From contig MCFH01000026.1 of NCBI GenBank assembly GCA_002104945.1, forward strand, positions 1 to 64,000: DNA of 64,000 nt, read 5' to 3'. Numbering within the stretch: position 1 is the first letter of the stretch; each line of letters begins with the position of its first letter. The notes under the pieces were generated by a model. The model was not told the origin of the DNA. It worked only from the letters and a program-made list of their open reading frames with translations, and ran no database searches. Both the position numbers and the translations under genes were made by a program. Source of the DNA: Piromyces finnis finn (lineage: Eukaryota; Fungi; Neocallimastigomycota). Below are positions 1 to 22,292 of the stretch, one piece after another.

Positions 1-3000
1 CTATTGTTGTATTGTTTCTTGTAAGAGACTGATTCACTCTACATCATGTAAAAATACTATTCACAAGCTTTCTGGTGTCGACATTCTTGATTCAAATTTT
101 TTACCAATTTAAATATTTAATGAAAAGTAAAGTCAAACAAGTTTAGTGTCAAAAAGCGATTCGAATTTACTAACAACAAACCAAAACTAGAATTTTAAAG
201 AAAATTTACAACTAGAATTCAAAAAAAGAAACTTTAAACAAAGCATCGTAACAATTTTTGTACTATCCCAGTACTTTTAAGAAGAGAGAGAGAGACAGAT
301 TTTTTTTCCATATACGTTATATTTATATTTTTATTAGTATTTATTTTATATTCAATATTTTTAATTAGAATTTATTATCATGTCAGTCCTTTATATTAAA
401 GACAAGAATTATATCAGACGTGGTACCCGGTCTTATGGTATCCCCTTAGATGATATTCGCTCCTTCTTTATCCGTGGTATTCGATCATGGTCAGTAAATA
501 TGCTATGGGAAAAACTCGAGGTTATTCTAGAAGATAAATTTAATTCAGTTATTAGTGTTAAATATTTTCAGACTTTCAATGATCACTTTTTCTTAGTCAA
601 GGTTCATGGTTCATCGAAAGATTGTATTAAAATCTTACACATGTTAAAGAAGAAACTTTCAGTTACCTCAATTTCCTTTTCAGCTCGTAGTAGAAGGAAT
701 CACAAATACACTTTTTCCACTCTCAAACGTAAAATTTTAGTTTCTAATAAACATCAACATTCTATTCAACAATCATTTCAACAATCAGTTCAACAATCTC
801 ATCAACAATCCGATCTTCAACTAGATCTTCAACAAGATCTTCAACAAGTTTCCAATCATGAAAATATTCCAGATCTACAGCAAACACAATTTCAATCTCA
901 ACATTCAACAATTAATTCTAATAGCTCTATCAACTCTGATAACAGTTCAATAGTTGATAGTTCTTCAGTTTCACAGCCATCTAGTAATAGTTCTACTTAT
1001 TCCTCTGATGCATCATCCATTAATAACGATGACTTTAATAATAATAATAATAGCAACGATTCTTCCTCATCCAACAAGCCTGATAACTTTTCTTTTTGTC
1101 TTAGTTGGAACACCAATGGGTGGAATCACGAAAAGAGAGATAGTATTAGCTATTTCACAGCTATTTTCAAACCATTATTTTTATGTTTCCAAGAAACTGG
1201 TAATGGTTCTGGATCGAATACAGATTATCCTTGTCGTGTTACTTTGCGAAACTATAGACACTTTTTCAAGAAAGCTGACGAATCAGTTCCGGGAATGAGA
1301 GGTTTATATTTAGGTTTTCACAATTCATGTCAAGCCTCACTTGAAAACTTCTCTGGAAAGTATATTATTTCTATTTATACTTTTAGTCTCTGGAATAGAT
1401 TCAAATGCTCGATTGGAAATGTTTATATGCCTCATAGTCATCACAACATCTATGTTGATCATGCAAAGTTAGAAGTTCGCTTGTGGTTACAAACTCATTC
1501 ATCCCATCCATCGATTCTTGTTGGTGATTTTAATATGTCTAAAGTAAAATTATCCAACTGGTTATCAACTAATGGATTAGGAGATTGGGAAATTCTTCCG
1601 CTTAGAGGGTCTACTATCTCTTGGACTCGAGGTGATCAATCTTCCGACATTGACCATGCTCTTATCAATTCGAAGATGAAAGATCTTATTCACTCAGGAT
1701 CATTTATAAATAATTTTTATCCTGTATCAGACCATAAGCCACTTCTTATTAATGGTAAAATTATTCCTATGGAAGATTTTTCTAATGACTTTAATGTTCC
1801 TAAGAAAATTCTGAAATGGAATAGATTAAAATGTATTGAGGAAAAGGAATCTATTCTCAGTCATAATAAATTCCAAATACTTTCAGCAAAATCCAACGAT
1901 CCTAATGTTTCTACAGATGAACTTTCCAAAGAGTTTACTTCAACTGCTTTTTCAATTGCAGACGAGCTCAGTATTACTTCAGCAAATAATGTTATAAAGT
2001 CTTCATTTCATATTTCACAACAAATTTTTAATCTTCAAAAAATCAAAATGAAGTTGTATAAGAGATTTAAAAAAGAAAGAATTTATGATATAGATGAATT
2101 TATTAAAAGAATTAAAATCTACCGTAAACTCATTGATTACATCCACAAAAGATGTAATGAATTTAGGAAGCAAGAATATCTTCATTGGATTAAAACAGGA
2201 TGTGAGTATATGAAGAGTCATAATCCTAAGAAGGCCTGGAAATGGATCAAGAAAACTGCAAAAATTGGAAAAGATTCTTTCTTTATTGCTCAACCAATTA
2301 AAAATAAAAATGGAGAATTAGTTGTTGCTACGGAAGAACAACTAGATGTGTGGCATGATCATTTCGAAAATCTTGCATCAGACCCAAGTGGTGTAAGTCT
2401 TGATTTGGAGCATTGGTATGAAGAACCAACGAATAAACGTTTTTCACTTCCTATGCTTGATGAGTGGGATATCAACCAAGATATTAGTATTGATGAAGTC
2501 AAGTCAGCTATCCTCACTACTCCAAATTATAAAGCATCAGGTCCGGATGGTATTCCAATTGAATTTTACAAAGCATTAGTTCCATCAAGTAATGATTCTA
2601 ATAATGCTACAGATAATAATTCTTCTGGTAATACTACTTCAGATAATGATGCTCATGGTTTAAATTTTATTCTTAAATTATTCAACCGTATTTGGGATGG
2701 AGATTTCCCCAACTCATGGAATGAATCCAGTATTGTTTCTATTCCTAAGAAGGGAGATTTGACAGATTGTGATAACTATCGAGGTATATCACTTATCAAT
2801 AATGGTATTAAGTTGATTTCCAAAATTGTCACCACTAGAATCTCAGAATATGGTTTAAAGAATAATTTCATTAGACCTGAACAATTTGGTTTTCGAAAAA
2901 AGGAAGAAAGTATTAGTCTTTTCATTTCAATCCAAGAAATATGCCGTAGACGTCAATTAGATAATAAAGAGACATATTTGGCCTTTTTAGATCTCAGGAA

Positions 3001-5136
3001 AGCATACGATTCAGTCCCAATCGGTAATATTCTCCATAAATTAGATTGTTTAGGAATCCGAGGTAAGAGTCTACAATTTATCAAAAATTTATATTTAACA
3101 TCTAAGGCTAATGTCAAATTAGATGGACAATTCTCGAAATCTTTTGATGTGAAGAAAGGAGTCCGTCAAGGTTGCCCTCTTTCTCCTATTCTCTTTAATC
3201 TCTTTATTAATGATATATTTAGAGAGTGCGAAGATCTAGGAGTCAGTTTAGGTGACACTCGATGCTGTGGTGGACTTTTTGCAGATGATATAGTTATTTG
3301 TGCTCCAACAAGAGGATGCTTAAAAAAGATGCTTAGAAGAGTTAATGAATGGGCATTGTATAATGAAATGGAATTTGGTATCCAGAAATGTTCAACGATG
3401 GTGATTCGTCCTGAATCAATAGAAAATCAGAACAAGAGAGATCCAACATTTTACTTAGCAGGACAACCCATTCCAACTACTGATTGCTATACTTATCTTG
3501 GTGTTCCATTTGATAAGAATCTGTCCCTTAAACCAGTAATTAAAGCTCTTAATAACAAGGTTTTGAAAGGCTTTTCTCAGTCAGTAAATTCTTAAGAAAT
3601 CCTAATATTCCTATTCCTTTCAAAAAACTAGTACTTAACTCACAAGTGATTAGCAGAGTTTCATACTTTGCACCATTACTTGGATCCAACAAAGCTAGGT
3701 CTAGGATTGCTCAGAAGCATGTTAACAAAGGAATACGATGGGTTGCCGGAGTTCATAAAGCTGTATCGTTTATATCTTTATACTCTATTTCAAAAGATTT
3801 GAATATTCCTCCATTGTCAGCCAAATGTGCGTTAGCTCAGGTTAGATGTTTTAACAAATGGAAAAACTCAAATTGTATTATCTCACACCTTGTCAATTAC
3901 ATTCCTAAATTTAGAAAATACACGTGGTGCAAATCAAGTAGGACACTTGATAAAAAATTAAAGAAACATGGAGATGTTAAAGCAGTTAAAAACTTTTATT
4001 GGAAAGATCTCAAAGGGAATTCAATCAAAGCGCAATATTATGATGATAATAAATTTATTGAAACTAAAGATTTTATTAAATTATGTTATGAGTACCCAGA
4101 GTTTGCCTATGGCTTCTACTGGCTATTGAAAGCAAGAAGCGGATACAAGTTGGATGCTAGAGTTGCCAAAGCTGCCAAATTTGTTGATCCAGTTTGTCCT
4201 AACTACTGTCCATGTTGCAAGTGTGGAGATCAAAGTATTAAACATTGGTTATTAGATTGTCCAACATTTAGAGATATCCGTATTAAACATTATGATTCCA
4301 TAGTCCAGCTATTAAATTTTTTCAGTCAACGTAATTCCAATAGTCCTATCAATAATAATGAAATTGATAATATCAGTAGAGATAGTAATAACATTAATAG
4401 TAATAGTAACAATAGTAGTAATAACAATAGTAATAGTAACAATAGTAATAGTAACAATAGTAATAATAACAATAATAGAAATAATAATATTAGTAATGAT
4501 AGCAATAGTGAAGATAATAATTCTAATTTAGATAGTAATTTAGTTAATGATAGTAATAGTTCTAATAATCCGGTGAATATTAATGTGTATGATTATTCTA
4601 GTGTGTGCAGTAAAATATTTAAATTCCTTCTTGGGGGAAGAAGTTTTAACAATATTAATTACAATTCAAGGGAATGGAAAGAACTTTGTAAGCGTCAGAT
4701 TCAATCTGGTACTAACGAAGGAACACCATTCTTGACGGTAACCGCGGAACTTCTAACCAAAATCATGCCTTTTGCTATTGGCCAGCAATGGTCAATGTTC
4801 AAAAGGTTTGAAGCAACATCCAAGAGCGTCAATGCTGAAGAAACAGTAAGACAGGCCAGGAGGGCCAGCGCAACCAATGGAGATCATAATTTTGTTCCAT
4901 GACAAAATTTTGATCTTTGGCTCGGTGTCCCATTGGAAGTCAAATACAATTATTATACTTTAGTATGATAGTGGCTTTCTTACTTTAATTAAAATTACTA
5001 GAATACATTATACCCAATTTTTATTCATTTGTGTTTATTTAAACATATTTTTTTTATTTTTATTTTATTTTAATTTTTTATTACATGTATTATAATTTTA
5101 ATTAAATTAATAATAAAGTTTAAAATATTTGATGCC

Positions 5137-5189
<53 letters not shown>
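1..5189 (+). mobile_element. Non-LTR retrotransposon (APE-RT-CCHC, single long ORF), copy 1; 5' end lies beyond the window start
   Basis: Position 1 matches 5641 and 11427 (same 5' leader in three copies). ORF starts at 380, 3' UTR is 4903-5139, and a 50-nt poly(A) occupies 5140-5189. Confidence 0.95.
380..4902 (+). CDS. Retrotransposon polyprotein (N-terminal domain, AP endonuclease, reverse transcriptase, CCHC finger), split by one 1-nt deletion at 3569-3570; restored length 1507 aa
   Basis: APE motifs LSWNTNG, CFQET, ILVGDFN, DIDHAL, SDHKPL. RT motifs GPDGIP, YRGISL, QFGFR, FLDLRKAYDSV, GVRQGCPLSP, LFADD, YTYLG. Zinc finger CPCCKCGDQSIKHWLLDC. Copy 1 has GG where copies 2 and 3 have GGG (9220-9222, 12800-12802). 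Confidence 0.92.
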
Positions 5190-5192
<3 letters not shown>

Positions 5193-5480
5193 ATGCTCAT
5201 GGTACTGAGAGAGTAGAAAGAATTAAATCCAAGTATTGCGCAATGGATGCTTGGTGCCCTCTTAGGAATGTGCCTTCATTTATTTAATAAATGTAATTTC
5301 TCAAGGGGTCTACTCATGCTCATGGTACTGAGAGAGTAGAAAGAATTAAATCCAAGCATTGCGCAATGGATGCTTGGTTAGTCTTCAAGGGAAAATTATT
5401 AGGACTAAGCTCATGGTACTGAGCGATTAAAAAACATTTTATTCATCAAATTTAAGTATTTGATGAATAAGTGAATGTTT
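5190..5480 (+). repeat. Structured 5' monomer array of copy 2 (modules A-B-C-A-B, then unique hairpins)
   Basis: A = tactcatgctcatggtactgagagagtagaaag, B = aattaaatccaag(t/c)attgcgcaatggatgcttgg, C = ccctctt...ctcaagggg(g)tc. The period is 123 nt here. A perfect 13-bp inverted repeat lies at 5439-5451/5458-5470. Confidence 0.9.
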
Positions 5481-6020
5481 GATTTTCAGGTAAGTTTGTA
5501 TAGTATTTAATTAGAAGAGTAATACATTTTGTTGCTGTATTTTTTCTTTTATTCATGTATTCATGTAGTACTACTCTTCTCTTGTAAGAATCCAATGTAG
5601 TCAACTTTAGCATTTGCATTGTACTTTTATATTCATGTAGCTATTGTTGTATTGTTTCTTGTAAGAGACTGATTCACTCTACATCATGTAAAAATACTAT
5701 TCACAAGCTTTCTGGTGTCGACATTCTTGATTCAAATTTTTTACCAATTTAAATATTTAATGAAAAGTAAAGTCAAACAAGTTTAGTGTCAAAAAGCGAA
5801 TCGAATTTACTAACAACAAACCAAAACTAGAATTTTTAAAGAAAATTTACAACTAGAATTCAAAAAAAGAAACTTTAAACAAAGCATCGTAACAATTTTT
5901 GTACTATCCAGTACTTTTAAGAAGAGAGAGAGAGACAGATTTTTTTCCATATACGTTATATTTGTAATTTTTATTAGTATTTATTTTATATTCAATATTT
6001 TTTAATTAGAATTTATTATC

Positions 6021-9000
6021 ATGTCAGTCCTTTATATTAAAGATAAGAATTATATCAGACGTGGTACCCGGTCTTATGGTATCCCCTTAGATGATATTCG
6101 CTCCTTCTTTATCCGTGGTATTCGATCATGGTCAGTAAATATGCTATGGGAAAAACTCGAGGTTATTCTAGAAGATAAATTTAATTCAGTTATTAGTGTT
6201 AAATATTTTCAGACTTTCAATGATCACTTTTTCTTAGTCAAGGTTCATGGTTCATCAAAAGATTGTATTAAAATCTTACACATGTTAAAGAAGAAACTTT
6301 CAGTTACCTCAATTTCCTTTTCAGCTCGTAGTAGAAGGAATCACAAATACACTTTTTCCACTCTCAAACGTAAAATTTTAGTTTCTAATAAACATCAACA
6401 TTCTATTCAACAATCATTTCAACAATCAGTTCAACAATCAGTTCAACAATCTCATCAACAATCCGATCTTCAACAAGATCTTCAACAGGATCTTCAACAA
6501 GTTTCCCATCATGAAAATATTCCAGATCTACAGCAAACACAATTTCAATCTCAACATTCAACAATTAATTCTAATAGTTCTATCAACTCTGATAACAGTT
6601 CAATAGTTGATAGTTCTTCAGTTTCACAGCCATCTAGTAATAGTTCTACTTATTCCTCTGATGCATCATCCATTAATAACGATGACTTTAATAATAATAA
6701 TAATAGCAACGATTCTTCCTCATCCAACAAGCCTGATAACTTTTCTTTTTGTCTTAGTTGGAACACCAATGGGTGGAATCACGAAAAGAGAGATAGTATT
6801 AGCTATTTCACAGCTATTTTCAAACCATTATTTTATGTTTCCAAGAAACTGGTAATGGTTCTGGATCGAATACAGATTATCCTTGTCGTGTTACTTTGCG
6901 AAACTATAGACACTTTTTCAAGAAAGCTGACGAATCAGTTCCGGGAATGAGAGGTTTATATTTAGGTTTTCACAATTCGTGTCAAGCCTCACTTGAAAAC
7001 TTCTCTGGAAAGTATATTATTTCTATTTATACTTTTAGTCTCTGGAATAGATTCAAATGCTCGATTGGAAATGTTTATATGCCTCATAGTCATCACAACA
7101 TCTATGTTGATCATGCAAAGTTAGAAGTTCGCTTGTGGTTACAAACTCATTCATCCCATCCATCGATTCTTGTTGGTGATTTTAATATGTCTAAAGTAAA
7201 ATTATCCAACTGGTTATCAACTAATGGATTAGGAGATTGGGAAATTCTTCCGCTTAGAGGGTCTACTATCTCTTGGACTCGAGGTGATCAATCTTCCGAC
7301 ATTGACCATGCTCTTATCAATTCGAAGATGAAAGATCTTATTCACTCAGGATCATTTATAAATAATTTTTATCCTGTATCAGACCATAAGCCACTTCTTA
7401 TTAATGGTAAAATTATTCCTATGGAAGATTTTTCTAATGACTTTAATGTTCCTAAGAAAATTCTGAAATGGAATAGATTAAAATGTATTGAGGAAAAGGA
7501 ATCTATTCTCAGTCATAATAAATTCCAAATACTTTCAGCAAAATTCAACGATCCTAATGTTTCTACAGATGAACTTTCCAAAGAGTTTACTTCAACTGCT
7601 TTTTCAATTGCAGACGAGCTCAGTATTACCTCAGCAAATAATGTTATAAAGTCTTCATTTCATATTTCACAACAAATTTTTAATCTCCAAAAAATCAAAA
7701 TGAAGTTGTATAAGAGATTTAAAAAAGAAAGAATTTATGATATAGATGAATTTATTAAAAGAATTAAAATCTACCGTAAGCTCATTGATTACATCCACAA
7801 AAGATGTAATGAATTTAGGAAACAAGAATATCTTCATTGGATTAAAACAGGATGTGAGTATATGAAGAGTCATAATCCTAAGAAGGCCTGGAAATGGATC
7901 AAGAAAACTGCAAAAATTGGAAAAGATTCTTTCTTTATTGCTCAACCAATTAAAAACAAAAATGGAGAATTAGTTGTTGCTACGGAAGAACAACTAGATG
8001 TGTGGCATGATCATTTCGAAAAGCTTGCATCAGATCCAAGTGGTGTAAGTCTTGATTTGGAGCATTGGTATGAAGAACCAACGAATAAACGTTTTTCACT
8101 CCCTATGCTTGATGAATGGGATATCAACCAAGATATTAGTATTGATGAAGTCAAGTCAGCTATCCTCTCTACTCCGAATTATAAAGCATCAGGTCCGGAT
8201 GGTATTCCAATTGAATTTTACAAAGCATTAATTCCATCAAGTAATGATTCTAATAATGCTACAGATAATAATTCTTCCGGTAATACCACTTCAGATAATG
8301 ATGCTTATGGTTTAAATTTTATTCTTAAATTATTCAACCGTATTTGGGATGGAGATTCCCCAACTCATGGAATGAATCCAGTATTGTTTCTATTCCTAAG
8401 AAGGGAGATTTGACAGATTGTGATAACTATCGAGGTATATCACTTATCAATAATGGTATTAAGTTGATTTCCAAAATTGTCACCACTAGAATCTCAGAAT
8501 ATGGTCTAAAGAATAATTTCATTAGACCTGAACAATTTGGTTTTCGAAAAAAGGAAGAAAGTATCAGTCTTTTCATTTCAATCCAAGAAATATGCCGTAG
8601 ACGTCAATTAGATAATAAAGAGACATATTTGGCCTTTTTAGATCTCAGGAAAGCATACGATTCAGTCCCAATCGGTAATATTCTCCATAAATTAGATTGT
8701 TTAGGAATCCGAGGTAAGAGTCTACAATTTATCAAAAATTTATATTTAACATCTAAGGCTAATGTCAAATTAGATGGACAATTCTCGAAATCTTTTGATG
8801 TGAAGAAAGGAGTCCGTCAAGGATGCCCTCTTTCTCCTATTCTCTTTAATCTCTTTATTAATGATATATTTAGAGAGTGCGAAGATCTAGGAGTCAGTTT
8901 AGGTGACACTCGATGCTGTGGTGGACTTTTTGCAGATGATATAGTTATTTGTGCTCCAACAAGAGGATGCTTAAAAAAGATGCTTAGAAGAGTTAATGAA

Positions 9001-10553
9001 TGGGCATTGTATAATGAAATGGAATTTGGTATCCAGAAATGTTCAACGATGGTGATTCGTCCTGAATCAATAGAAAATCAGAACAAGAGAGATCCAACAT
9101 TTTACTTAGCAGGACAACCCATTCCAACTACTGATTGTTATACTTATCTTGGTGTTCCATTTGATAAGAATCTGTCCCTTAAACCAGTAATTAAAGCTCT
9201 TAATAACAAGGTTTTGAAAGGGCTTTTCTCAGTCAGTAAATTCTTAAGAAATCCTAATATTCCTATTCCTTTCAAAAAACTAGTACTTAACTCACAAGTG
9301 ATTAGCAGAGTTTCATACTTTGCACCATTACTTGGATCCAACAAAGCTAGGTCTAGGATTGCTCAGAAGCATGTTAACAAAGGAATACGATGGGTTGCCG
9401 GAGTTCATAAAGCTGTATCGTTTATATCTTTATACTCTATTTCAAAAGATTTGAATATTCCTCCATTGTCAGCCAAATGTGCGTTAGCTCAGGTTAGATG
9501 TTTTAACAAATGGAAAAACTCAAATTGTATTATCTCACACCTTGTCAATTACATTCCTAAATTTAGAAAATACACGTGGTGCAAATCAAGTAGGACACTT
9601 GATAAAAAATTAAAGAAACATGGAGATGTTAAAGCAGTTAAAAACTTTTATTGGAAAGATCTCAAAGGGAATTCAATCAAAGCGCAATATTATGATGATA
9701 ATAAATTTATTGAAACTAAAGATTTTATTAAATTATGTTATGAGTACCCAGAGTTTGCCTATGGCTTCTACTGGCTATTGAAAGCAAGAAGCGGATACAA
9801 GTTGGATGCTAGAGTTGCCAAAGCTGCCAAATTTGTTGATCCAGTTTGTCCTAACTACTGTCCATGTTGCAAGTGTGGAGATCAAAGTATTAAACATTGG
9901 TTATTAGATTGTCCAACATTTAGAGATATCCGTATTAAACATTATGATTCCATAGTCCAGCTATTAAATTTTTTCAGTCAACGTAATTCCAATAGTCCTA
10001 TCAATAATAATGAAATTGATAATATCAGTAGAGATAGTAATAACATTAATATAATAGTAACAATAGTAGTAATAACAATAGTAATAGTAACAATAGTAAT
10101 AGTAACAATAGTAATAATAACAATAATAGAAATAATAATATTAGTAATGATAGCAATAGTGAAGATAATAATTCTAATTTAGATAGTAATTTAGTTAATG
10201 ATAGTAATAGTTCTAATAATCCGGTGAATATTAATGTGTATGATTATTCTAGTGTGTGCAGTAAAATATTTAAATTCCTTCTTGGGGGAAGAAGTTTTAA
10301 CAATATTAATTACAATTCAAGGGAATGGAAAGAACTTTGTAAGCGTCAGATTCAATCTGGTACTAACGAAGGAACACCATTCTTGACGGTAACCGCGGAA
10401 CTTCTAACCAAAATCATGCCTTTTGCTATTGGCCAGCAATGGTCAATGTTCAAAAGGTTTGAAGCAACATCCAAGAGCGTCAATGCTGAAGAAACAGTAA
10501 GACAGGCCAGGAGGGCCAGCGCAACCAATGGAGATCATAATTTTGTTCCATGA
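6021..10553 (+). pseudogene. Copy 2 polyprotein ORF broken by three 1-nt deletions (~6831, ~8356, ~10051); these may be sequencing errors
   Basis: ORF pieces 6021-6950, 6896-8413, 8344-10182 and 10224-10553 rebuild the copy 1 protein. T5->T4 at 6831-6834, T3->T2 at 8356-8357, missing G near 10051. Confidence 0.88.
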
Positions 10554-10815
10554 CAAAATTTTGATCTTTGGCTCGGTGTCCCATTGGAAGTCAAATACAA
10601 TTATTATACTTTAGTATGATAGTGGCTTTCTTACTTTAATTAAAATTACTAGAATACATTATACCCAAATTTTATTCATTTGTGTTTATTTAAACATATT
10701 TTTTTTATTTTTATTTTTATTTTTATTTTTTATTACATGTATTATAATTTTAATTAAATTAATAATAAAGTTTAAAATATTTGATGCCGTTAAAAAAAAA
10801 AAAAAAAAAAAAAAA

Positions 10816-11270
10816 TACTCATGCTCATACCCTCTTGGGAACGTGCCTTCATTTATTTAATAAATGTAGTTTCTCAAGGGGGTCTACTCATGCTCATGGT
10901 ACTGAGAGAGTAGAAAGACCCTCTTGGGTACGTGCCTTCATTTATTTAATAAATGTAGTTTCTCAAGGGGGTCTACTCATGCTCATGGTACTGAGAGAGT
11001 AGAAAGAATTAAATCCAAGTATCGCGCAATGGATGCTTGGTGCCCTCTTGGAAACGTGCCTTCATTTATTTAATAAACGTAGTTTATCAAGGGAGTCTAC
11101 TCATGCTCATGGTACTGAGAGAGTAGAAAGAATTAAATCCAAGCATTGCGCAATGGATGCTTGGTTAGTCTTTAAGGGAAAATTATTAGGACTAAGCTCA
11201 TGGTACTGAGCGATTAAAAAACATTTTATTCATCGAATTAAGTATTTGATGAATAAGTTGAATGTTTGAT
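10816..11270 (+). repeat. Structured 5' monomer array of copy 3 (truncated A, C, A, C, A, B, C, A, B, then unique hairpins)
   Basis: A modules start at 10816 (13 nt only), 10885, 10974 and 11098, so complete monomers have periods of 89 and 124 nt. Confidence 0.9.
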
Positions 11271-11848
11271 ACTCAGGTAAGTTTGTATAGTATTTAATTA
11301 GAAGAGTAATACATTTTGTTGCTGTATTTTTCTTTTATTCATGTATTCATGTAGTACTACTCTTCTCTTGTAAGAATCCAATGTAGTCAACTTTAGCATT
11401 TGCATTGTATTTTTATATTCATGTAGCTATTGTTGTATTGTTTCTTGTAAGAGACTGATTCACTCTACATCATGTGAAAATACTATTCACAAGCTTTCTG
11501 GTGTCGACATTCTTGATTCAAATTTTTTACCAATTTAAATATTTAATGAAAAATAAAGTCAAACAAGTTTAGTGTCAAAAAGCGATTCGAATTTACTAAC
11601 AACAAACCAAAACTAGAATTTTTAAAGAAAATTTACAACTAGAATTCAAAAAAAAGAAACTTTAAACAAAGCATCGTAACAATTTTTGTACTATCCAGTA
11701 CTTTTAAGAAGAGAGAGAGAGACAGATTTTTTTCCATATACGTTATATTTATAATTTTTATTAGTATTTATTTTATATTCAATATTTTTTTAATTAGAAT
11801 TTATTATCATGTCAGTCCTTTATATTAAAGATAAGAATTATATCAGAC

Positions 11849-13930
11849 GTGGTACCCGGTAATACCACTTCAGATAATGATGCTCATGGTTTAAATTTTA
11901 TTCTTAAATTATTCAACCGTATTTGGGATGGAGATTTCCCCAACTCATGGAATGAATCCAGTATTGTTTCTATTCCTAAGAAGGGAGATTTGACAGATTG
12001 TGATAACTATCGAGGTATATCACTTATCAATAATGGCATTAAGTTGATTTCCAAAATTGTCACCACTAGAATCTCAGAATATGGTCTAAAGAATAATTTC
12101 ATTAGACCTGAACAATTTGGTTTTCGAAAAAAGGAAGAAAGTATTAGTCTTTTCATTTCAATCCAAGAAATATGCCGTAGACGTCAATTAGATAATAAAG
12201 AGACATATTTGGCCTTTTTAGATCTCAGGAAAGCATACGATTCAGTCCCAATTGGTAATATTCTCCATAAATTAGATTGTTTAGGAATCCGAGGTAAGAG
12301 TTTACAATTCATCAAAAATTTATATTTAACATCTAAGGCTAATGTCAAATTAGATGGACAATTCTCGAAATCTTTTGATGTGAAGAAAGGAGTCCGTCAA
12401 GGTTGCCCTCTTTCTCCTATTCTCTTTAATCTCTTTATTAATGATATATTTAGAGAGTGCGAAGATCTAGGAGTCAGTTTAGGTGACACTCGATGCTGTG
12501 GTGGACTTTTTGCAGATGATATAGTTATTTGTGCTTCAACAAGAGGATGCTTAAAAAAGATGCTTAGAAGAGTTAATGAATGGGCATTGTATAATGAAAT
12601 GGAATTTGGTATCCAGAAATGTTCAACGATGGTGATTCGTCCTGAATCAATAGAAAATCAGATCAAGAGAGATCCAACATTTTACTTAGCAGGACAACTC
12701 ATTCCAACTACTGATTGCTATACTTATCTTGGTGTTCCATTTGATAAGAATCTGTCCATTAAACCAGTAATTAAAGCTCTTAATAACAAGGTTTTGAAAG
12801 GGCTTTTCTCAGTCAGTAAATTCTTAAGAAATCCTAATATTCCTATTCCTTTCAAAAAACTAGTACTTAACTCTCAAGTGATTAGCAGAGTTTCATACTT
12901 TGCACCATTACTTGGATCCAACAAAGCTAGGTCTAGGATTGCTCAGAAGCATGTTAACAAAGGAATACGATGGGTTGCCGGAGTTCATAAAGCTGTATCG
13001 TTTATATCTTTATACTCTATTTCAAAAGATTTGAATATTCCTCCATTGTCAGCCAAATGTGCGTTAGCTCAGGTTAGATGTTTTAACAAATGGAAAAACT
13101 CAAATTGTATTATCTCACACCTTGTCAATTACATTCCTAAATTTAGAAAATACACGTGGTGCAAATCAAGTAGGACACTTGATAAAAAATTAAAGAAGCA
13201 TGGAGATGTTAAAGCAGTTAAAAACTTTTATTGGAAAGATCTCAAAAGGAATTCAATCAAAGCGCAATATTATGATGATAATAAATTTATTGAAACTAAA
13301 GATTTTATCAAATTATGTTATGAATACCCAGAGTTTTCCTATGGCTTCTACTGGCTCTTGAAAGCAAGAAGCGGATACAAGTTGGATGCTAGAGTTGCCA
13401 AAGCTGCTAAATTTGTTGATCCAGTTTGTCCTAACTACTGTCCATGTTGCAAGTGTGGTGTTCAAAGTATTAAACATTGGTTATTAGATTGTCCAACATT
13501 TAGAGATATCCGTATTAAACATTATGATTCTATAGTCCATCTATTAAATTTTTTCAGTCAACGTAATTCCAATAGTCCTATCAATAATAATGAAAATGTT
13601 AATATCAGTAGAGATAGCAATAACATTAATAGTAATAGTAACAATAGTAGTAATAACAATAGTAATAGTAACAATAGTAATAGTAACAATAGTAGTAATA
13701 ACAATAGTAATAGTAACAATAGTAATAATAACAATAGTAGTAATAGAAATAGTAATAATAACAATAGTAGTAATAGAAATAGTAATAATAACAATAGTAG
13801 TAATAGAAATAATAATATTAGTAATGATAACAATAGTGAAGATAATAATTCTAATTTAGATAGTAATTTAGTTAATAATAGTAATAGTTCTAATAATCCG
13901 GTGAATATTTATGATTATTCTAGTGTATGA
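11849..13930 (+). pseudogene. RT + CCHC remnant ORF of copy 3
   Basis: All RT motifs and the zinc finger are present. The native ATG frame ends at ...ACC CGG TAA just after the deletion, and the listed ORF start is a GTG. Confidence 0.85.
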
Positions 13931-14900
13931 AATAAAATATTTAAATTCTTTTTTGAGGGAAAAAGTCTTAGCAAAGTATAATAGTGATCTTTTTACATTA
14001 ATTAAACACAAAGTTATATAATTCATATCCCTGTAATCAATTTCAAATAAATGGAAAAACTCCAAATTTATTATTTCTTATCTGGTCAATTGTATTCCTA
14101 AATATAGAAAATATACATGGTGTAAATCAAGTAGGCTCACCTGACAAAAAATTACAGAAATATGGAAATGTTAAAGACTTTTTAATTGAAAGATTTCAAA
14201 AAAAGAAAATCATAATAACGAATTTGTAGAAACCAAAAATTTTATTAAAATAGGTTATGAGCACATTGAATTTTTTTATGCTTAATACTGGTTCTTGAAA
14301 GTAAGAAGTGGATACAATTGAGATACTAAATTTGGTTATCTAATTTGTTTGAATTCCTGTCTATGTTGAAAAAGTGGTTATTAGAATATTAAATATTGAT
14401 TAACTAAATATCCAATAATTTAATAATATTCTTATTAAGCCTTTCAATTGATTATCTTAAAAATCGTTATACAATTAACCTTATTAATAATGGAAATAAT
14501 GATTATAATAACGACATTAGAAATAATACTACTAATAATAAATAATATTAGAATAGATAATATTTATGAAAATAAGGAAGATGGTAATTCTAATTCTTCA
14601 AATATGAATAATTATGCTAATTTAAATAAAACATTCTTTCTTAGAGGGAACTTTAGCTTATGATGAACTACAAATCAATAAGGCGGAACATAGACATTTA
14701 AATGAACAATCCATTCATTGGTAGAAAGTCTCTCGGCTTTTTTTTACTAAAATAATCCCTATCATTAGTAGTCATTAGTAGATCAATGAAGCTACTTTTT
14801 TACAGATTTAGTAAAGTACCTAACGTATACAAGAGTGCTGACGTCATACCAATATGAAAAAGGAACATTACAAATGTTCCATACACAGAGTTCAGTGTTA
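13931..14900 (+). mobile_element. Old degenerate relic(s) of the same LINE family (3' part)
   Basis: Decayed matches to KIFKFLLGGRSF (13930-13970), KWKNSNCIISHLVNYIPKFRKYTWCKSSR (14049-14135), DFIKLCYEY...WLLKARSGY (14235-14325) and an N-rich segment. End point is approximate. Confidence 0.75.
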
Positions 14901-15324
14901 GTATTTCTTCGAATAAAAACATGATGAACTCATGAGAGAGTTTAGTAGACACCACACTATCCTACCTGACCTGATGCTACTTTTACTTTTTTATTTCATT
15001 TAATTTATTACTTTATTAGGTAAGGACTCATCCCAAAGAGCACAAATTACAGAGTTCATTGAACAAACTTTTATACAGCTTAAATAATTATTTTATTTTA
15101 TTTTATCTTTATAACTTTATTTATGACTTATTATATCAATATGTAAAATCACAAAATAAATAAATAAATACAAGAAGTTTATACTCTTCATAGAATAAAA
15201 AAATTTTTAAAGTTTTTTTTCTATAAATCTAATTGATATTAATGTATATATCAATATTACAATGTATTAAAAAAAAAAATAAATCTCAAAATTTTTTTAT
15301 TGTGGTGGTAAAAAGTTTTAACAT

Positions 15325-15430
15325 GAATGGAAAGAATTTTGCATGTGTAATGTTAAATTGTGAATATATGGAAGATCATCATTTTTTGACAGTAAATGTG
15401 GAACTGTTAATCAAAATGATGACTTTATTA
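15325..15430 (+). mobile_element. LINE relic (C-terminal segment)
   Basis: tcattttttgacagtaaatgtggaactgttaatcaaaatgatg aligns with the element sequence ccattcttgacggtaaccgcggaacttctaaccaaaatcatg. Confidence 0.65.
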
Positions 15431-15534
15431 TACAATATTATGACAGTTACACTAATTTTTGTCTCCTAAAAACAACATGCTTTTGTTGATTTTGACTCTT
15501 AGTTCTATTGATTGTTCCAAAGATAGCTCTTGGA

Positions 15535-15830
15535 TAATACTAATACTAATACTAATACTAATACTAATACTAATACTAATACTAATACTAATACTAATAC
15601 TAATACTAATACTAATACTAATACTAATACTAATACTAATACTAATACTAATACTAATACTAATACTAATACTAATACTAATACTAATACTAATACTAAT
15701 ACTAATACTAATACTAATACTAATACTAATACTAATACTAATACTAATACTAATACTAATACTAATACTAATACTAATACTAATACTAATACTAATACTA
15801 ATACTAATACTAATACTAATACTAATACTA
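15535..15830. repeat. (TACTAA)n hexamer tract, about 49 perfect units
   Basis: Read directly from the sequence; a short degenerate tail extends to ~15855. Confidence 0.98.
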
Positions 15831-16529
15831 CATACTAATAATACTAATACTAATAATAATGTGATAATAACATAATAACTCCTTCCTTTACCTCATGTGT
15901 TTTTGTATGAGTTTATGCGCATGAATACTTTTTTTCAAAGAATAATTTAATTTAATATAATATTAAATTTAAATTAAAATTTCTTTTTTCATCAATAAAC
16001 GGCTAATTTTATATTAAAAAAAATTCCAATCAGCTAAAAATGATTTTTACCCAAAATACTATGAATAATATTAAAATTATATTTTTTTACAATTGATTTG
16101 CTGGAAAAAAAAAAAGGATCAAATCCTTTTTAATATTATTTTATTTTTAATAAAAGAAATTAATAATATTAATTTTTTTTCTCACCTCACTTGTAAGTAT
16201 TATGCGGAAAAAAGTTAAAGAATTACTAAATGATTAACGGCAAAAAAAATAAAATAAAATGTATAAAAATGAAAATTATTTTCCTTTTTTTTTTTTTTTT
16301 TATTATTCAATATATTTTTTTGATAGAAATATACTTTATAAAATATTTGTAATATTTGTAAAATAAAAAAAAGTTTTATAAATAAAAATAACTACTACTG
16401 GTTAATTATTATTTTTATTAAATTTTTTAAAAAAAAATATTTTATTATTTTTACTTGCTAATTCAAATTAAATTAAATTATATATATAACTATTATTGTT
16501 AAAAAAGTCATTAAAAGTTTAATATCATC

Positions 16530-17948
16530 ATGAAATTTTTAAATACTATAGCTTTAATCGGTTTAGCCATTGTTGGTTCAAAGGCTATGAGAGATATCTC
16601 ATCAAAGGAATTAGTAAAAGATATCAAAATTGGTTGGAATTTAGGTAACACTTTAGATGCTCATTGTCTTGAATTCTTAGATTATTCCGAGGATCAAACT
16701 GCCTCTGAAACATGTTGGTTAAATCCAAGAGCCACCCAAGAACTTTTCGATAAATTAAGTGAAGTTGGTTTCAATACCTTCCGTATTCCAACAACTTGGA
16801 CTGGTCATTTTGGTGAAGGACCAGAATACAAAATTGATGATGCTTGGATGAAGAGAGTTCACGAAGTTGTTCAATATGCTATTAATACCGGTGGTTATGC
16901 CATTTTAAATGTACACCATGAAGATTGGAATTATGCCTTTGCTGATAATTTAGCATCCGCTGAAGTTATTTTAGAAGCACTTTGGAAACAAATTGCTGCC
17001 GAGTTTGAAGAATTTGATGAACATTTAATTTTCGAAGGAATGAACGAACCAAGAAAGGTTAATACTGATGTTGAATGGAATGGAGGAGATGAAGAAGGTT
17101 GGGAATTTGTCAATGAAATGAACGATCTTTTCATGAAAACTGTTCGTGCTTCCGGAGGTAATAATAAACTTCGCCATCTTATGATTCCAACTTATGCTGC
17201 TGCTCTTAATGAACATACTCTTGAAGCCTATAAATATCCAAATAATGATGATAAAGTTATTGTCTCTGTCCACTCCTACACTCCATATAACTTTGCCTTA
17301 GCTACAGATGATACTGCTGTTTCTGTATTTAATAATACTCAACCTATTGAATGGGCTATGAATAACATTAATACTTACTTCAGAAGTAAAGATATTCCAG
17401 TTATTATTGGTGAATTTGGTGCCATGAGTCGTAATAATGATGAAGATCGTATGAGATGGGCAGAATTGTTTGTTAGTAGTGCTAAATCCATGGGTGTTCC
17501 ATGTGTTTTATGGGATAATGGTGTATTTGAAGGAGATGGTGAACGTTTTGGTATTATTGATCGTTCCGAATTAACAATTACTTATCCATTATATCTTAAA
17601 GGATTAATGGCAGGTATTGGCAAAAATATTAATATTTCCGATTTTGAAACAACCCCATCTACTCCAACTACTACAATTCCAGCTATTATTGAAACCCCAA
17701 CTATTGATACTCCAGTTAATCCACCAGTTATTGAAACTCCACCAGTTATTGACACTCCAGTTAATCCACCAGTTATTGATAATGCTACTAATAACGAAGA
17801 TTATCTTTCATGTGCCAAGGATGATTATCAATGCAAATCTAAAAAATCAGAAGAATGTTACAAAAAGGTTTCTGAATGTTGGAATTCTCAACAAGACCAA
17901 AGCGCATGTATTAGTTTAGGTAATACATGTAGTAAAATATGGAATTAA
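16530..17948 (+). CDS. Secreted GH5 endoglucanase (GH5_4-like), intronless, with P/T linker and C-terminal 6-Cys module
   Basis: Signal peptide MKFLNTIALIGLAIVGSKA; GWNLGNTLDA, FRIPTTW, ILNVHHE, acid/base EGMNEP, HSYTP, nucleophile IGEFG, WDNG. Confidence 0.95.
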   Translation: MKFLNTIALIGLAIVGSKAMRDISSKELVKDIKIGWNLGNTLDAHCLEFLDYSEDQTASETCWLNPRATQELFDKLSEVGFNTFRIPTTWTGHFGEGPEYKIDDAWMKRVHEVVQYAINTGGYAILNVHHEDWNYAFADNLASAEVILEALWKQIAAEFEEFDEHLIFEGMNEPRKVNTDVEWNGGDEEGWEFVNEMNDLFMKTVRASGGNNKLRHLMIPTYAAALNEHTLEAYKYPNNDDKVIVSVHSYTPYNFALATDDTAVSVFNNTQPIEWAMNNINTYFRSKDIPVIIGEFGAMSRNNDEDRMRWAELFVSSAKSMGVPCVLWDNGVFEGDGERFGIIDRSELTITYPLYLKGLMAGIGKNINISDFETTPSTPTTTIPAIIETPTIDTPVNPPVIETPPVIDTPVNPPVIDNATNNEDYLSCAKDDYQCKSKKSEECYKKVSECWNSQQDQSACISLGNTCSKIWN

Positions 17949-18289
17949 ATTTAAATGTATTATTTTAAATTCAAAAAACTTTTTTCTTTAATTGTATTTA
18001 ATTACCATTTTAAATTTTATTATTTTTATTTTTGAAAGTTTTTTTTTTTTTTTAAAAAAATTATTGCGAATTACTTTATAACTTCATTTTTATTCTTATT
18101 AATTTCCTATTTAGTTTTTAATTAATATTAAATCAATATGTAAAAATTTTGTAAAAAAAAAAAGTATTATAAATATTTAATATTTGACACTTTTAAAAAA
18201 TATAATAAAATCATTAAAAAAAGTATATATATATATAAATTAATTACATGAATCATATTTTTGTAAGAATTGCGAAATATAGAAAATGT

Positions 18290-18440
18290 AGGTGTTATAC
18301 AAAGAATTTAACTGCTTTTTCAATTGCTAATTAGATCAACATTACTATAATAAATGAAATTGATAAATCGTTATTTAATATATATCATAACAATTCTTTA
18401 ATCTTCTGAAAATCAAATTGAAGCTTTATAAAGAATTCAA
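18290..18440 (+). mobile_element. LINE relic (post-APE linker region)
   Basis: aaagaatttaactgctttttcaattgc...tttaatcttctgaaaatcaaattgaagctttataaagaattc aligns with element positions ~1928-2070 (KEFTSTAFSIA...FNLQKIKMKLYKRF). Confidence 0.7.
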
Positions 18441-18640
18441 AAAAAAAAAAAAAAAAAAAAAAACATATGATGATTATATGGTAAAATTATATGCTTTTCT
18501 ATTTAGATTTTTCATTTTTATGTAAATGTCAACATAATATGCAAGATATAATGACTAAATATCAATAATGTTGATTTTATTATTAATATTCCCTTAAGAA
18601 AAAAAGATACGATAAGAAATTATAAGAAATAATACAATAA

Positions 18641-18740
18641 GAATATGAAACATATTGTAATGTATCAATAATTAGTATAAATAATAGAGTAAAGCTACAT
18701 TATAATATGATACAAAATGATAAAGGATAGTTGATCTTAC
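18641..18740 (+). repeat. ~100-bp direct repeat, left copy
   Basis: Matches 22612-22712 with roughly 7-8 differences counted by eye. Confidence 0.9.
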
Positions 18741-19205
18741 AATTTTTAATAATACACTGCCGTCATCACAATTAAGACAATTGTAATCTAAATTTTTACT
18801 CTCTTCATTACCTCTATTATAATATTAGTTACATAAAATATTTAAATATTTTTATTTTAATAATTAATATTTTTATTGTTAAAATAATCTGCAAATATTT
18901 TTTCTTTTAAAAAATTAACAATGGAATAATAATATTAATATATATAAATAAAATTGCAAATATATGATAAACTATAAAAATTATTCAAATTATATAATAG
19001 TTTGATGAATTTTTGCAACTAGTAATATATTGTTTTTTATTCCTTAAACTCTTCCAATACATTTATTTTCCTCCAATACTATTATGTATTTTTTGTATTA
19101 TTCTTTATCTTGTTCTTCACTTCCACTATTAATTTTGTAGTGGGACGAATTCATTTATAATTTATATATTTAATTATAATCAATTAAAATTTATATACTA
19201 AAAAA

Positions 19206-19293
19206 AATTATTATTATTTTTTATATGGCACTGTTATCACAATTAAAATAATTATTATTATTTTTTATATGGCACTGTTATCACAATTAAAAT
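19206..19293. repeat. Perfect 44-bp tandem duplication
   Basis: aattattattattttttatatggcactgttatcacaattaaaat occurs twice in tandem. Confidence 0.85.
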
Positions 19294-19625
19294 AATTATT
19301 ACCATAATATTCATGTTCATAGCATTCTTTTAAATTGTCATAACGCCATTTTATGAATACTCTTAATGTTTATAGTATTTATAATATTCTTTTTAATCTT
19401 CTTTAACTATTCTTCCAATTTATTTCCTTTTTATATTACTTGTAGTTTTTAGTTTTAGGCATATGATGAAATGATTAAATATTTAATCTATTTCAATTGA
19501 ATTATAAAATTTTTAAAAAATTGAAAAAAGATCACTTTTTAAACTTTTATATTATTAATATATTTCTTTACTTTTTAGTTTTTGTAATAAAAATAAATAT
19601 ATTAAAACTTACTTTATGCTATTTA

Positions 19626-22292
19626 TTATTTATTAAAAATTGATTTGAGAAAATTTTTTATTTTTACTTTGATATTTGAATCTGCACCTTTTTTATTTAA
19701 ATATTTAACTATTTCTTTGTTTCTTTGTTTACTTGCATAATGTAATGGCGTCTTTCCATCTTTATTTTTAGCATTAACATTTATTTTTTCATTTTCAATT
19801 AAATATTTAACTATGTTTTCATTTCCTTGATTGCATGCATAATGTAATGGTGTCCATCCACGTTCATTTTGAATATTAACATTTATTTTTTTATTTTCTA
19901 TTAAATATTTAACTATATTTGTATTTCCTTGATTGCATGCATAATGTAATGGTGTCCATCCATCTTCATTTTGAATATTAATATCTAATGTTTCATTTTC
20001 AATCAAATATTTTACTATATTTTCATTTCCTTGATAACATGCATAATGCAATGGTGTCCATCCATCATTATCTTTAATATTAACATCTAACTTTCTATCT
20101 TCAATTAAATATATAACAAGATTAGCATTATCATATTGAGATTGGCATGCGCAATGTAATGATATTCCTCCATTATTTCTTTTTATGTTTTCATCTGTCC
20201 CCTTTTCAATTAAATATTTAACTATTTTCTCATTTCCTATTTTACATGCAGAATGTAACGGTGTCTCTCCATCATTATCTTTAATATTAATATCTAATGC
20301 TTCATTTTCAATTAAATATTTAACTATTTCTTCATTTCTATGACCACATGCACAATGTAATGGTGTACATCCATCATTATCTTTAATATTAACATCTAAT
20401 CCTCTATCTTCGATTAAATATTTAACAAGATTAACATTTTCTTTTTGTGCTTCGCATGCATAATGCAATAATATTTTTCCATCATTACTTTTTATATTTT
20501 CATCCGCTCCTTTTTCTATCAAATATTTAACTATGTTTTCATTTCCTTGATTGCATGCATAATATAATGGTGTCCATCCACATTCATTTTGAATATTAAC
20601 ATTTATTTTTTTATTTTCTATTAAATATTTAACTATGTTTTCATTTCCTTGATTGCATGCATAATGTAACGGTGTCTCTCCATAATTATTTTGTATATTT
20701 ATGTCTATTTTTTCATTTTTAATTAAATATTTAATTATTTCTTCATTTCCTTGATTGCATGCACATTGTAATGGCGTCTTTCCATATTCGTTTTTAATAT
20801 TAATATCTAATCCTCTATCTTCAATTAAATATTTAACAAGATTAACATTTTCTTTTTGTGCTTCGCATACATAATGTAATGATATTTTTCCATAGTTATT
20901 TTTTATATTTTCATCTGCCCCCTTCTCAATTAAATATTTAATTATTTTTTCATTTCCTCGATCACATGCATAATGTAGTGGTGTACATCCATCATTATCT
21001 TTACTATTAACATCTAATCCTCTATCTTCGATTAAATATTTAACAAGATTAACATTTTCTCTTTCTGCTTCGCATGCATAATGTAATGATATTTTTCCAT
21101 CATTACTTTTTATATTTTCATCCGCTCCTTTTTCTATCAAATATTTAACTATGTTTTCATTTCCTTGACTGTATGCATAATGTAATGGTGTCCATCCACG
21201 TTCATTTTGAATATTTACATCTATTTTTTCATTTTCAATTAAATATTTAACTATTTTTTCATTTCCTTTATTGCATACATAATGTAATGGTGTCCATCCA
21301 CATTCATTTTGAATATTTACATCTATTTTTTCATTTTCAATTAAATATTTAACTATGTTTTCATTTCCTTGACTGCATGCATAATGTAACGGTGTCTCTC
21401 CATAATTATTTTGTATATTTATGTCTATTTTTTCATTTTTAATTAAATATTTAATTATTTCTTCATTTCCTTGATTGCATGCACATTGTAATGGCGTCTT
21501 TCCATATTCGTTTTTAATATTAATATCTAATCCTCTATCTTCAATTAAATATTTAACAAGATTAACATTTTCTTTTTGTGCTTCGCATGCATAATGTAAT
21601 GATATTTTTCCATAGTTATTTTTTATATTTTCATCTGCTCCTTTTTCAATTAAATAGTTAACTATATTTTCATTTCCTTGATTGCATGCACAATGTAATG
21701 GCGTCTTTCCATATTCATTTTTAATATTAATATCTAATCCTCTATCTTCAATTAAATATTTAACAAGATTAACATTTTCTCTTTCTGCTTCGCATGCATA
21801 ATGTAATGATATTTCTCCATCATTATTACTTATATTCTCATCTGCTCCTTTTTCTATTAAGTATTTCACAATATTTTCATATCCTTTTTTACAGGCATAA
21901 TGTAACGAAGTCCAATTATTATTATCTTGTTTGTTGATATCTATATCTCCTTTTCTATTAGTAATTAAATATTTAACAATATTGATGTTTTCTTTTTCTG
22001 CCTGACATGCAAAATGTAAAGGTGTATGTCCATCCTTGTTTTGTATATTGACATCTGCACCTTTATCAATTAAATATTTTACAATAGCTTCACTTCCCTT
22101 TTTGCAAGCATAATGTAAAAGAATACAATTATCATTATCTTTTTTATTTATATCAATTCTTAATTCTTCAATATTATGTTTAAATGACAATATATCGTCA
22201 TCATTGAAAGAAAATCTTTCAGAAAAAAAAATTACCGTTTCGTTTAACGACTCATTAATGTCATTCGTATCATCTGAATCATTAAAGCTCAT
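19626..22292 (-). CDS. Ankyrin-repeat protein (888 aa, more than 20 repeats), intronless
   Basis: Recurrent G.TPLHYAC..GNE.IVKYLIE.GAD.NI units, with DNA-level block duplications (20641 vs 21361). Confidence 0.95.
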   Translation of the reverse strand: MSFNDSDDTNDINESLNETVIFFSERFSFNDDDILSFKHNIEELRIDINKKDNDNCILLHYACKKGSEAIVKYLIDKGADVNIQNKDGHTPLHFACQAEKENINIVKYLITNRKGDIDINKQDNNNWTSLHYACKKGYENIVKYLIEKGADENISNNDGEISLHYACEAERENVNLVKYLIEDRGLDINIKNEYGKTPLHCACNQGNENIVNYLIEKGADENIKNNYGKISLHYACEAQKENVNLVKYLIEDRGLDINIKNEYGKTPLQCACNQGNEEIIKYLIKNEKIDINIQNNYGETPLHYACSQGNENIVKYLIENEKIDVNIQNECGWTPLHYVCNKGNEKIVKYLIENEKIDVNIQNERGWTPLHYAYSQGNENIVKYLIEKGADENIKSNDGKISLHYACEAERENVNLVKYLIEDRGLDVNSKDNDGCTPLHYACDRGNEKIIKYLIEKGADENIKNNYGKISLHYVCEAQKENVNLVKYLIEDRGLDINIKNEYGKTPLQCACNQGNEEIIKYLIKNEKIDINIQNNYGETPLHYACNQGNENIVKYLIENKKINVNIQNECGWTPLYYACNQGNENIVKYLIEKGADENIKSNDGKILLHYACEAQKENVNLVKYLIEDRGLDVNIKDNDGCTPLHCACGHRNEEIVKYLIENEALDINIKDNDGETPLHSACKIGNEKIVKYLIEKGTDENIKRNNGGISLHCACQSQYDNANLVIYLIEDRKLDVNIKDNDGWTPLHYACYQGNENIVKYLIENETLDINIQNEDGWTPLHYACNQGNTNIVKYLIENKKINVNIQNERGWTPLHYACNQGNENIVKYLIENEKINVNAKNKDGKTPLHYASKQRNKEIVKYLNKKGADSNIKVKIKNFLKSIFNK

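Follow-up and report, generated by a model that had tools for sequence, protein, structure and literature searches.

Introduction

The 5' modules of LINEs such as R2 and L1Tc govern how 5' ends form, how stable the RNA is and how second-strand steps proceed, and they have been used to engineer RNA-templated gene insertion. At the 5' ends of mouse L1 and Dictyostelium TRE5-A, tandem units of ~100-200 bp are present in variable number (monomers and A-modules, respectively). The L1Tc element of Trypanosoma cruzi has an internal promoter and an HDV-like ribozyme combined in its first 77 nt, and the GC-rich 5' stem of this uncapped RNA has been proposed to protect its end (PMC3383444). The R2 protein binds a pseudoknotted 5' RNA, which licenses second-strand cleavage (PMC2346776; bioRxiv 10.1101/2023.04.07.536001), and stable 5' folds improve R2-templated insertion (PMC11331408). 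Our literature search found no description of LINEs in Neocallimastigomycota.

The LINE leader described here resembles L1Tc Pr77/L1TcRz (PMC3383444, PMC3185411) in being a short 5'-end module, with a GC-rich helix at +1 and a pseudoknot, that different elements of one clade have in common and that each new insertion carries along. It differs in having no sequence or Rfam match to that module and in the position of the pseudoknot partner, which lies in a hairpin loop here and in the 3' tail there. With the 5' modules of R2 (PMC2346776; 10.1101/2023.04.07.536001; PMC11331408) it shares the character of a structured, pseudoknotted LINE 5' RNA, for which a role as a protein platform is plausible. 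R2, however, uses a restriction-like endonuclease, is rDNA-specific and relies on co-transcription, whereas the present LINE is of the APE type and dispersed, and its leader has another fold. Unlike the situation in mouse L1 and TRE5-A, only a 124+124 pair of units is inherited, and the other units appear to be truncated stumps at insertion junctions. The arrays recall the tandem dimers of McGurk and Barbash (PMC5932611), in which double insertion at one site yields head-to-tail copies that expand and collapse by recombination, except that here the favoured site is part of the LINE's own leader (nt 54-69 and 74-95) and not of a host target.

The leader matches no curated RNA family, yet it keeps its architecture and has been swapped between distant LINE families. 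Being short and well defined, it is a candidate new 5'-end module and possibly a new ribozyme; we regard it as a structured LINE 5' module, with a modest chance that it represents a new class of 5'-end-forming RNA. The preference for self-insertion would offer a simple way in which a dispersed LINE could form head-to-tail arrays and in which families could exchange 5' ends.

Results

The element and its copies in the window

The window is the 64,000-nt stretch of DNA analysed here, the initial 64 kb of contig C152 in the very AT-rich genome (56.46 Mb, 232 contigs) of the anaerobic gut fungus Piromyces finnis. Its segments 10816-11270 and 5190-5480 are the 5' leaders of a young, high-copy, poly(A)-ended LINE with APE and RT domains. 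The ORFs of this 5.67-kb element contain Exo_endo_phos (APE) and RVT_1 (RT) domains (Pfam, window), and the leader lies upstream of the APE and RT ORF in an element that ends in poly(A) and is flanked by target-site duplications (TSDs) of 12-15 bp. Other copies retain intact ORFs of ~1,500 aa.

Three copies, E1, E2 and E3, lie head-to-tail on the (+) strand between position 1 and ~14000. E1 is cut by the contig start and closes with a poly(A) tail of A50 (5140..5189) that is joined directly to leader nt 58/59 of E2. E2 occupies 5190-10815, with its poly(A) tail at 10792..10815; its leader, delimited by blastn against the canonical element and by sequence (5190..5488), is without nt 1-58 and extends through the remainder of unit 1 (5190-5255) and through unit 2 (5256-5379) to the unique hairpins, as far as GTAAGT at 5489. 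E3 starts at 10919 and continues downstream of its leader from 11277 to 13974, with the 5' UTR reaching element nt 941, where an internal deletion joins nt 941 to nt 3146 (window ~11856); its 3' end is missing beyond ~nt 5170. At 11856-11860 and 13650-14600, E3 runs into older fragments of the same clade that are 69-83% identical, and this spot must therefore have been struck repeatedly over a long time.

Layout of the leader

Repeats of 89 and 124 bp had been described in an earlier note made from the sequence; TRF recovered both periods (89 nt at 10829-11007, 98% match; 124 nt at 10919-11165, 94%), and the bases quoted there are correct. The canonical leader consists of two 124-nt units, each with hairpins C, A and B, followed by a unique part. 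In unit 1 of E3 (10919..11042, + strand, as are all features of this leader), helix P1 pairs 10919-10928 with 10962-10971 and spans the pseudoknot strand GUGCC (10932-10936) and an inner hairpin (10939-10955). Hairpin A follows at 10972-11003, with the loop UGGUAC at 10986-10991, and hairpin B at 11015-11040, with the loop GCGCAAUG at 11024-11031. Unit 2 (11043..11166) has A and B intact and uncompensated changes in stem C. The unique part (11167..11276) holds a hairpin of UUAGUCUU and AGGACUAA, another GCUCA-UGGUAC-UGAGC and a 13-bp hairpin, and stops before GTAAGT at 11277; its first ~70 nt are also present in a second family of the same genome (family 2, below).

Two partial leaders precede E3. 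The 13 nt corresponding to nt 57-69, TACTCATGCTCAT, together with one extra A (10816..10829, +), may be what remains, on the right-hand side, of a leader already in place, in the region of the hot-spot target duplication. The 89-nt "monomer" (10830..10918, +) equals leader nt 1-89 (hairpins C and A) and runs straight into nt 1 of the next copy; it would be the left-hand stump of such a resident leader.

The 5' end of the element

A pattern made from the start of unit 1 had 489 matches in the genome against 0 for the reversed control, corresponding to ~490 leader copies. TSD-flanked copies begin exactly at the first C of CCCTCTTGGG, and the element start CCCTCTTGGGAACGTGCC recurs in many unrelated flanks. 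The TSD directly abuts CCCTC in L188 (TCATAATTTTGT), L185 (GTCCGTCAAGGTT) and L008/L223 (GGGGGAAAGAAT), while in L181 it is CTGTCCATGTTGCAA plus one extra T. From these DNA copies we infer that the transposition RNA would start at the first C of CCCUCUUGGG. The 5' ends of relatives likewise begin with 3-5 C. Since a C start is unusual for Pol II, it would be no less compatible with processing than with an internal promoter. Some apparent TSDs are very long: ~30 bp in L191 (G000:C1:855100-865099) and possibly ~150 bp at C57 in L220/L150 (G000:C57:301750-308260).

Fold of the leader RNA

Folding of one unit as RNA gave a minimum free energy of -40.2 kcal/mol (z = -3.9) and the same three hairpins that the earlier note had drawn as modules. 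Hairpin C pairs CCCUCUUGGG with CUCAAGGGGG around CAUUUA/UAAAUG, hairpin A encloses CUCA-UGGUAC-UGAG between UCUACUC and GAGUAGA, and hairpin B pairs CCAAGUAUC with GAUGCUUGG. In the whole leader (10920-11276; z = -5.9), the GCUCA-UGGUAC-UGAGC and 13-bp hairpins that had been spotted in the unique part are present in the fold as well. Other details needed correction. The long stem C exists, but its AGA/UCU extension is limited to internal units, element starts being set by the TSDs at the first C of CCCTCTTGGG. In the second (internal) units, in which A and B are intact, stem C carries uncompensated changes at pairs 2, 8 and 10. The double exchange of C10842/G10869 for T5269/A5296 has the bases as stated, but it is a single event whose pairing depends on the chosen model.

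In alignment-free shuffles, nt 1-90 or 1-130 scored z between -2 and -5.5 in 9-10 of 11 lineages, against values mostly of ~0, and a few of -2 to -3, in control segments from the downstream UTR. In 9 of 10 lineages the sense strand was the more stable one, exceeding the antisense strand by 7.7 kcal/mol on average, because of its G-U pairs. A hairpin acting in the antisense strand or cDNA was excluded on the ground that G-U pairs stabilise the sense strand more in 9 of the 10 leaders.

Because MAFFT alignments of diverged leaders put stem C in the wrong place, the helices were curated by hand, and the structural comparison covers ~8-10 related leaders of roughly five types from relatives with ORFs 45-70% identical to those of the window family. 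Only ~8 close relatives whose 5' ends could be used came from the metagenome scan, and one (L206) from the scan of the genome collection. Contigs of this LINE clade also occur in rumen bins labelled Clostridia, Erysipelotrichaceae, Methanosphaera and Gammaproteobacteria (L205-L208); these are fungal DNA contaminating bacterial and archaeal bins.

The P1, A and B helices and a 5-bp pseudoknot were confirmed in 8 leaders of differing sequence. At least five leader types follow one plan, in which P1 starts no more than 2 bases from nt +1, a single strand lies within P1 from nt 13-15, and a hairpin with a complementary 6-nt loop comes directly after P1. Relatives whose ORFs are 45-60% identical thus preserve the architecture on other sequences: P1, both A stems and the B stem vary with pairing retained, and the B loop GCGCAAUG is kept on three unrelated stems; the inner hairpin is missing in leader type II. 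In the model-fitted alignment, 96% of cells were paired, and pairs changed on both sides numbered 7, where shuffles gave 1.3 +/- 1.0 and slid controls 0-2; the count of 7 depends mainly on one diverged sequence and on the model-fitted alignment itself. A covariance model of the window family retrieved L038 at 54 bits (E = 1.7e-11), gave L031 just 8.8 bits and missed types II-V. The ~5 leader types thus combine compensatory change in relatives with a stability that exceeds that of shuffles and is biased to the sense strand, as in a conserved structured RNA, and the modelled secondary structure is well supported for this small sample of related leaders. The proposal of an uncharacterised structured RNA is accordingly upheld by cross-family covariation, sense-strand bias, strongly negative z values and the lack of an Rfam family.

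A pairing of loop A with the GUGCC strand, also suspected earlier, is retained in five leader types. The paired segments are GUGCC:GGUAC in the window, GUAUC:GGUAC in L038, GUACC:GGUGC in L031, CCGUA:UACGG in L032, L040 and L041, and GUACU:AGUAC in L035 and L115. Shuffle P values per lineage ranged from 0.01 to 0.27, in leaders that share ancestry. The predicted loop-A pseudoknot is probable, with moderate support.

Comparison with known RNA classes

At E <= 1, neither window 1-20000 nor any of 10 related elements matched an Rfam family, the HDV/CPEB3/drz covariance models and those of pistol, hatchet, twister and twister-sister included. The likeness to pistol suggested earlier thereby found no match at this threshold, and the hammerhead register, likewise suggested, contains no CUGANGA (the window has CUGAGAG) and gave no Rfam hammerhead match. 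Inspection by hand also set the fold apart from HDV-like ribozymes: it is the loop of hairpin A that takes up the strand after P1, and there is no conserved P2 partner beyond A. The start of P1 within 2 bases of +1 agrees with an HDV-like topology, but the missing inner hairpin of type II disagrees with it. A tRNA-like origin was rejected, as ARAGORN found no tRNA in the window and the helix order is unlike that of a cloverleaf.

Variable units and insertion hot spots

Successive starts are spaced by 68, 69, 81, 89, 90, 94, 98, 118, 124, 129, 189 or 213 nt. Of the 115 distinct junctions that we sorted by the sequence immediately 5' of nt 1, 50 show unrelated flank, 3 pure poly(A) and 62 element sequence, the latter in the same orientation and often with 0-5 odd bases. 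The extra units end anywhere from position 25 to 129 and always abut nt 1 of the next copy. Hot spots are seen within the leader: left stumps ending at nt 65-69 are followed by nt 1 at 20 loci, and those ending at nt 88-95 at 9 loci and at window 10918. On the other side, poly(A) is joined to nt 54, 55, 57 or 59 in 15 loci and at window 10816. In four arrays, left and right partners lie ~5.7 kb apart and overlap by 11-13 bp, the length of target duplications elsewhere (C1:1521k/1527k, unit-2 nt 54-65; C159, nt 59-69; C232, nt 57-69; C166, nt 84-95). These matched right-hand partners identify the extra units as insertion junctions. Likewise, 10-kb maps and 3' flanks showed that short internal pieces upstream of full copies are older copies broken by a TSD-flanked newcomer. 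Template jumping as the sole source of sequence upstream of nt 1 was overturned by these TSD-flanked nested insertions and now appears as a minor contributor.

The junctions suggest that most 69/89-nt units are what was left of a resident leader when a new copy split it and that leader DNA is, by this evidence, an insertion hot spot for new copies. A "structured target" had been among the possibilities raised, and it is borne out in part only, in that leader DNA is a hot spot for new insertions. The other suggestion, of a promoter-monomer array like that of mouse L1, fails on the extra 69/89-nt units, which are junction products with heterogeneous ends; whole inherited units of one length were not found, and only the 124+124 pair is constant.

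Nested insertion alone fails to account for all stumps because partners are few (only 3 right-hand partners were found for the nt 89-95 class) and because some arrays (C1:910k and C57:302k) run out into plain flank, with the right-hand partner missing. Partnerless stumps would need the collapse of tandem copies by recombination or template switching by the RT. In L204, a 24-nt 3' fragment of tRNA-Met and a T-run trailer lie between the leader stump and nt 1, a junction whose sequence suggests an RT template switch. Two further arrays start 23 and ~90 nt downstream of tRNA-Ala/tRNA-Met genes in the same orientation (L216:143-214; L182:8785-8857). The proximity to tRNAs (including L204:185-215) may reflect either a preference for sites downstream of tRNA genes or a switch of the RT onto pre-tRNA.

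Portability between families and composite leaders

Family 2 of the same genome has an ORF 45-47% identical to that of the window family (66% to P0018) and a 5' UTR of ~1.4 kb, which contains one almost identical C-A-B unit and two unique-part hairpins before the sequences diverge. It was found at L199-L204 (G000:C2:1116560-1117000, C20:20960-21400, C163:331340-331780, C206:114560-115000, C68:778000-778640 and C155:48100-48560). Such a near-identical leader points to a recent exchange of 5' ends between the families. In L038, the window leader type is stacked on the start of another family, CCCGATGATGG, which forms the 5' end by itself in L206. As judged from these sequences, the leader is a portable 5' module common to two distant LINE families.

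A composite leader, [unit1][unit2 1-89]G[unit1][unit2], occurs in L006 and L007, with different flanks, and in L005. Its presence in different flanks means that multi-unit RNAs are made and transposed, with an intact internal unit sometimes retained. The composite was retrotransposed at least twice, an outcome hard to square with every intact unit being cleaved efficiently.

The 5' UTR of each family also contains a consensus 5' splice site, CAG|GTAAGT or ATG|GTAAGT (window 11277-11800 and 5489-6009; L032:505-515; L195:625-635). In the window family, TTAATTAG just before the ATG suggests a putative intron of ~520 nt (GTAAGT at 11277 and 5489); the one spliced junction tried, from GTAAGT to TTAATTAG, was absent from all genomic copies. 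Despite their differing leaders, all related families have kept a non-coding block in which CATGTAG and CTTGTAAGA motifs recur and which has TGATTCACTC as its core (window 11340-11480 and 5550-5700; L031:400-500; L034:410-450; L035:1380-1510; L038:640-790; L040:410-560; L118:130-290); this block may be a promoter or another RNA element.

Discussion

We consider it likely that the segment is the structured, pseudoknotted 5' leader of a young LINE and that its extra units arose mostly by insertion into older leaders. The first ~90 nt would fold into a compact domain opened by the GC-rich helix P1, within 2 bases of nt +1. The strand within P1, from ~nt 13-15, would pair with the 6-nt loop of hairpin A to give a kissing or pseudoknot fold, and hairpin B would come next with its conserved loop GCGCAAUG. 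Such a domain would most likely shield the RNA's 5' end and offer its conserved loops to the element's own protein, and the leader DNA probably also positions the 5' end, like the dual promoter/RNA modules of other LINEs.

The same leader DNA would serve as a target. The 124+124 duplication is fixed and inherited. A first nick before nt 54-59 (or 74-84) and a second after nt 65-69 (or 88-95) would produce the 11-13-bp target duplication, and the extra units of 69 or 89-95 nt would be the stumps left when a new copy integrates into a resident leader. Repeated strikes would build head-to-tail arrays such as E1-E2-E3, and a stump before a newcomer, if transcribed from its own start, could give rise to chimeric leaders such as that of L038. 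At least four successive hits on leaders could account for the array in the window: a copy starting at 10830 would have landed after nt 69 of a resident leader (10829 being the extra A), E3 after nt 89 of that newcomer, the copy bearing E2 before nt 57 of the first resident's stump, and E1 before nt 58/59 of E2.

The fold could have a different purpose. It might be a new self-cleaving ribozyme or the signal for a host RNase (e.g., RNase P), cut immediately 5' of P1, so that read-through transcripts or those of tandem arrays would release uncapped RNA of unit length, as happens with the HDV-like ribozymes of R2 and L1Tc. We regard this as unlikely, even though every leader type opens with 3-5 C and has its P1 beginning no more than 2 bases from nt +1, and the compact pseudoknotted fold is conserved with covariation. 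Co-transcripts are likely given the head-to-tail arrays, the junctions are without an extra-G cap signature, and the internal second units carry stem-C-breaking changes that differ between subfamilies and leave A and B intact, all of which would suit cleavage, for which L1TcRz, cutting just upstream of +1, sets a precedent (PMC3383444). Weighing against it are the lack of an Rfam ribozyme at E <= 1 in window 1-20000 or 10 related elements, a topology that is not HDV-like and loses the inner hairpin in one leader type, and the intact internal unit 1 kept in the composite leader of L006, L007 and L005. Only tentatively, and at a similarly low probability, would we take the kissing-hairpin leader for a new class of 5'-end-forming RNA, be it a ribozyme or an RNase-processed mimic, that yields uncapped, C-started, exonuclease-resistant template RNAs for LINEs of anaerobic gut fungi and marks the leader, be it DNA or nascent RNA, as the landing site that new copies prefer.

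Two other explanations concern the units. If these were DNA promoter monomers like those of mouse L1 or the A-modules of TRE5-A, the hairpins would be incidental and unit number would change by unequal exchange. The tandem units at a LINE 5' end, the movement of the leader between families, as with acquired L1 5' UTRs, and the array at C1:904k, which repeats a 259-bp unit, would all fit, as would the ACGTG/CCGTA motif, which we take to be somewhat like a downstream promoter element. This explanation is nonetheless very improbable, because helices stay paired as the sequences of relatives change, the sense strand is much the stabler through G-U pairs, and the extra units end at positions 25 to 129 with 0-5 odd bases and always abut nt 1, and matched right-hand partners with 11-13-bp overlaps mark insertion junctions. 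It is unlikely that all extra units and arrays stem from single integrations in which the RT jumped from the 5' end of its RNA to the 3' end of another RNA or RNA fragment. This would account for units that always abut nt 1 with few untemplated bases, for the arrays at C1:910k and C57:302k that are without a right-hand partner, for the single 12-bp duplication flanking the composite L008/L223, and for L204, where the tRNA-Met fragment with its T-run trailer is the trace expected of a jump onto the 3' end of a pre-tRNA; template jumping is known for R2-type enzymes (PMC2881922). Jumping, however, does not predict the overlaps of 11-13 bp, equal to the TSD length, in complete arrays, and the internal "snippets" proved to be older copies broken by TSD-flanked insertion. 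Insertion of new copies into resident leaders, with the folded leader RNA at the 5' end of each, is thus the reading that we prefer.

Beyond the array, the window contains other repeats and genes. A perfect (TAATAC) repeat of ~54 copies lies at 15535-15860, and an array of ~21 copies of a 102-nt (34-codon) repeat with 73% match, possibly a repeat-protein gene on the minus strand, at 19690-22150. Between them, at 16530-17948, an intact ORF encodes a glycosyl hydrolase family 5 cellulase domain (E = 1e-70).
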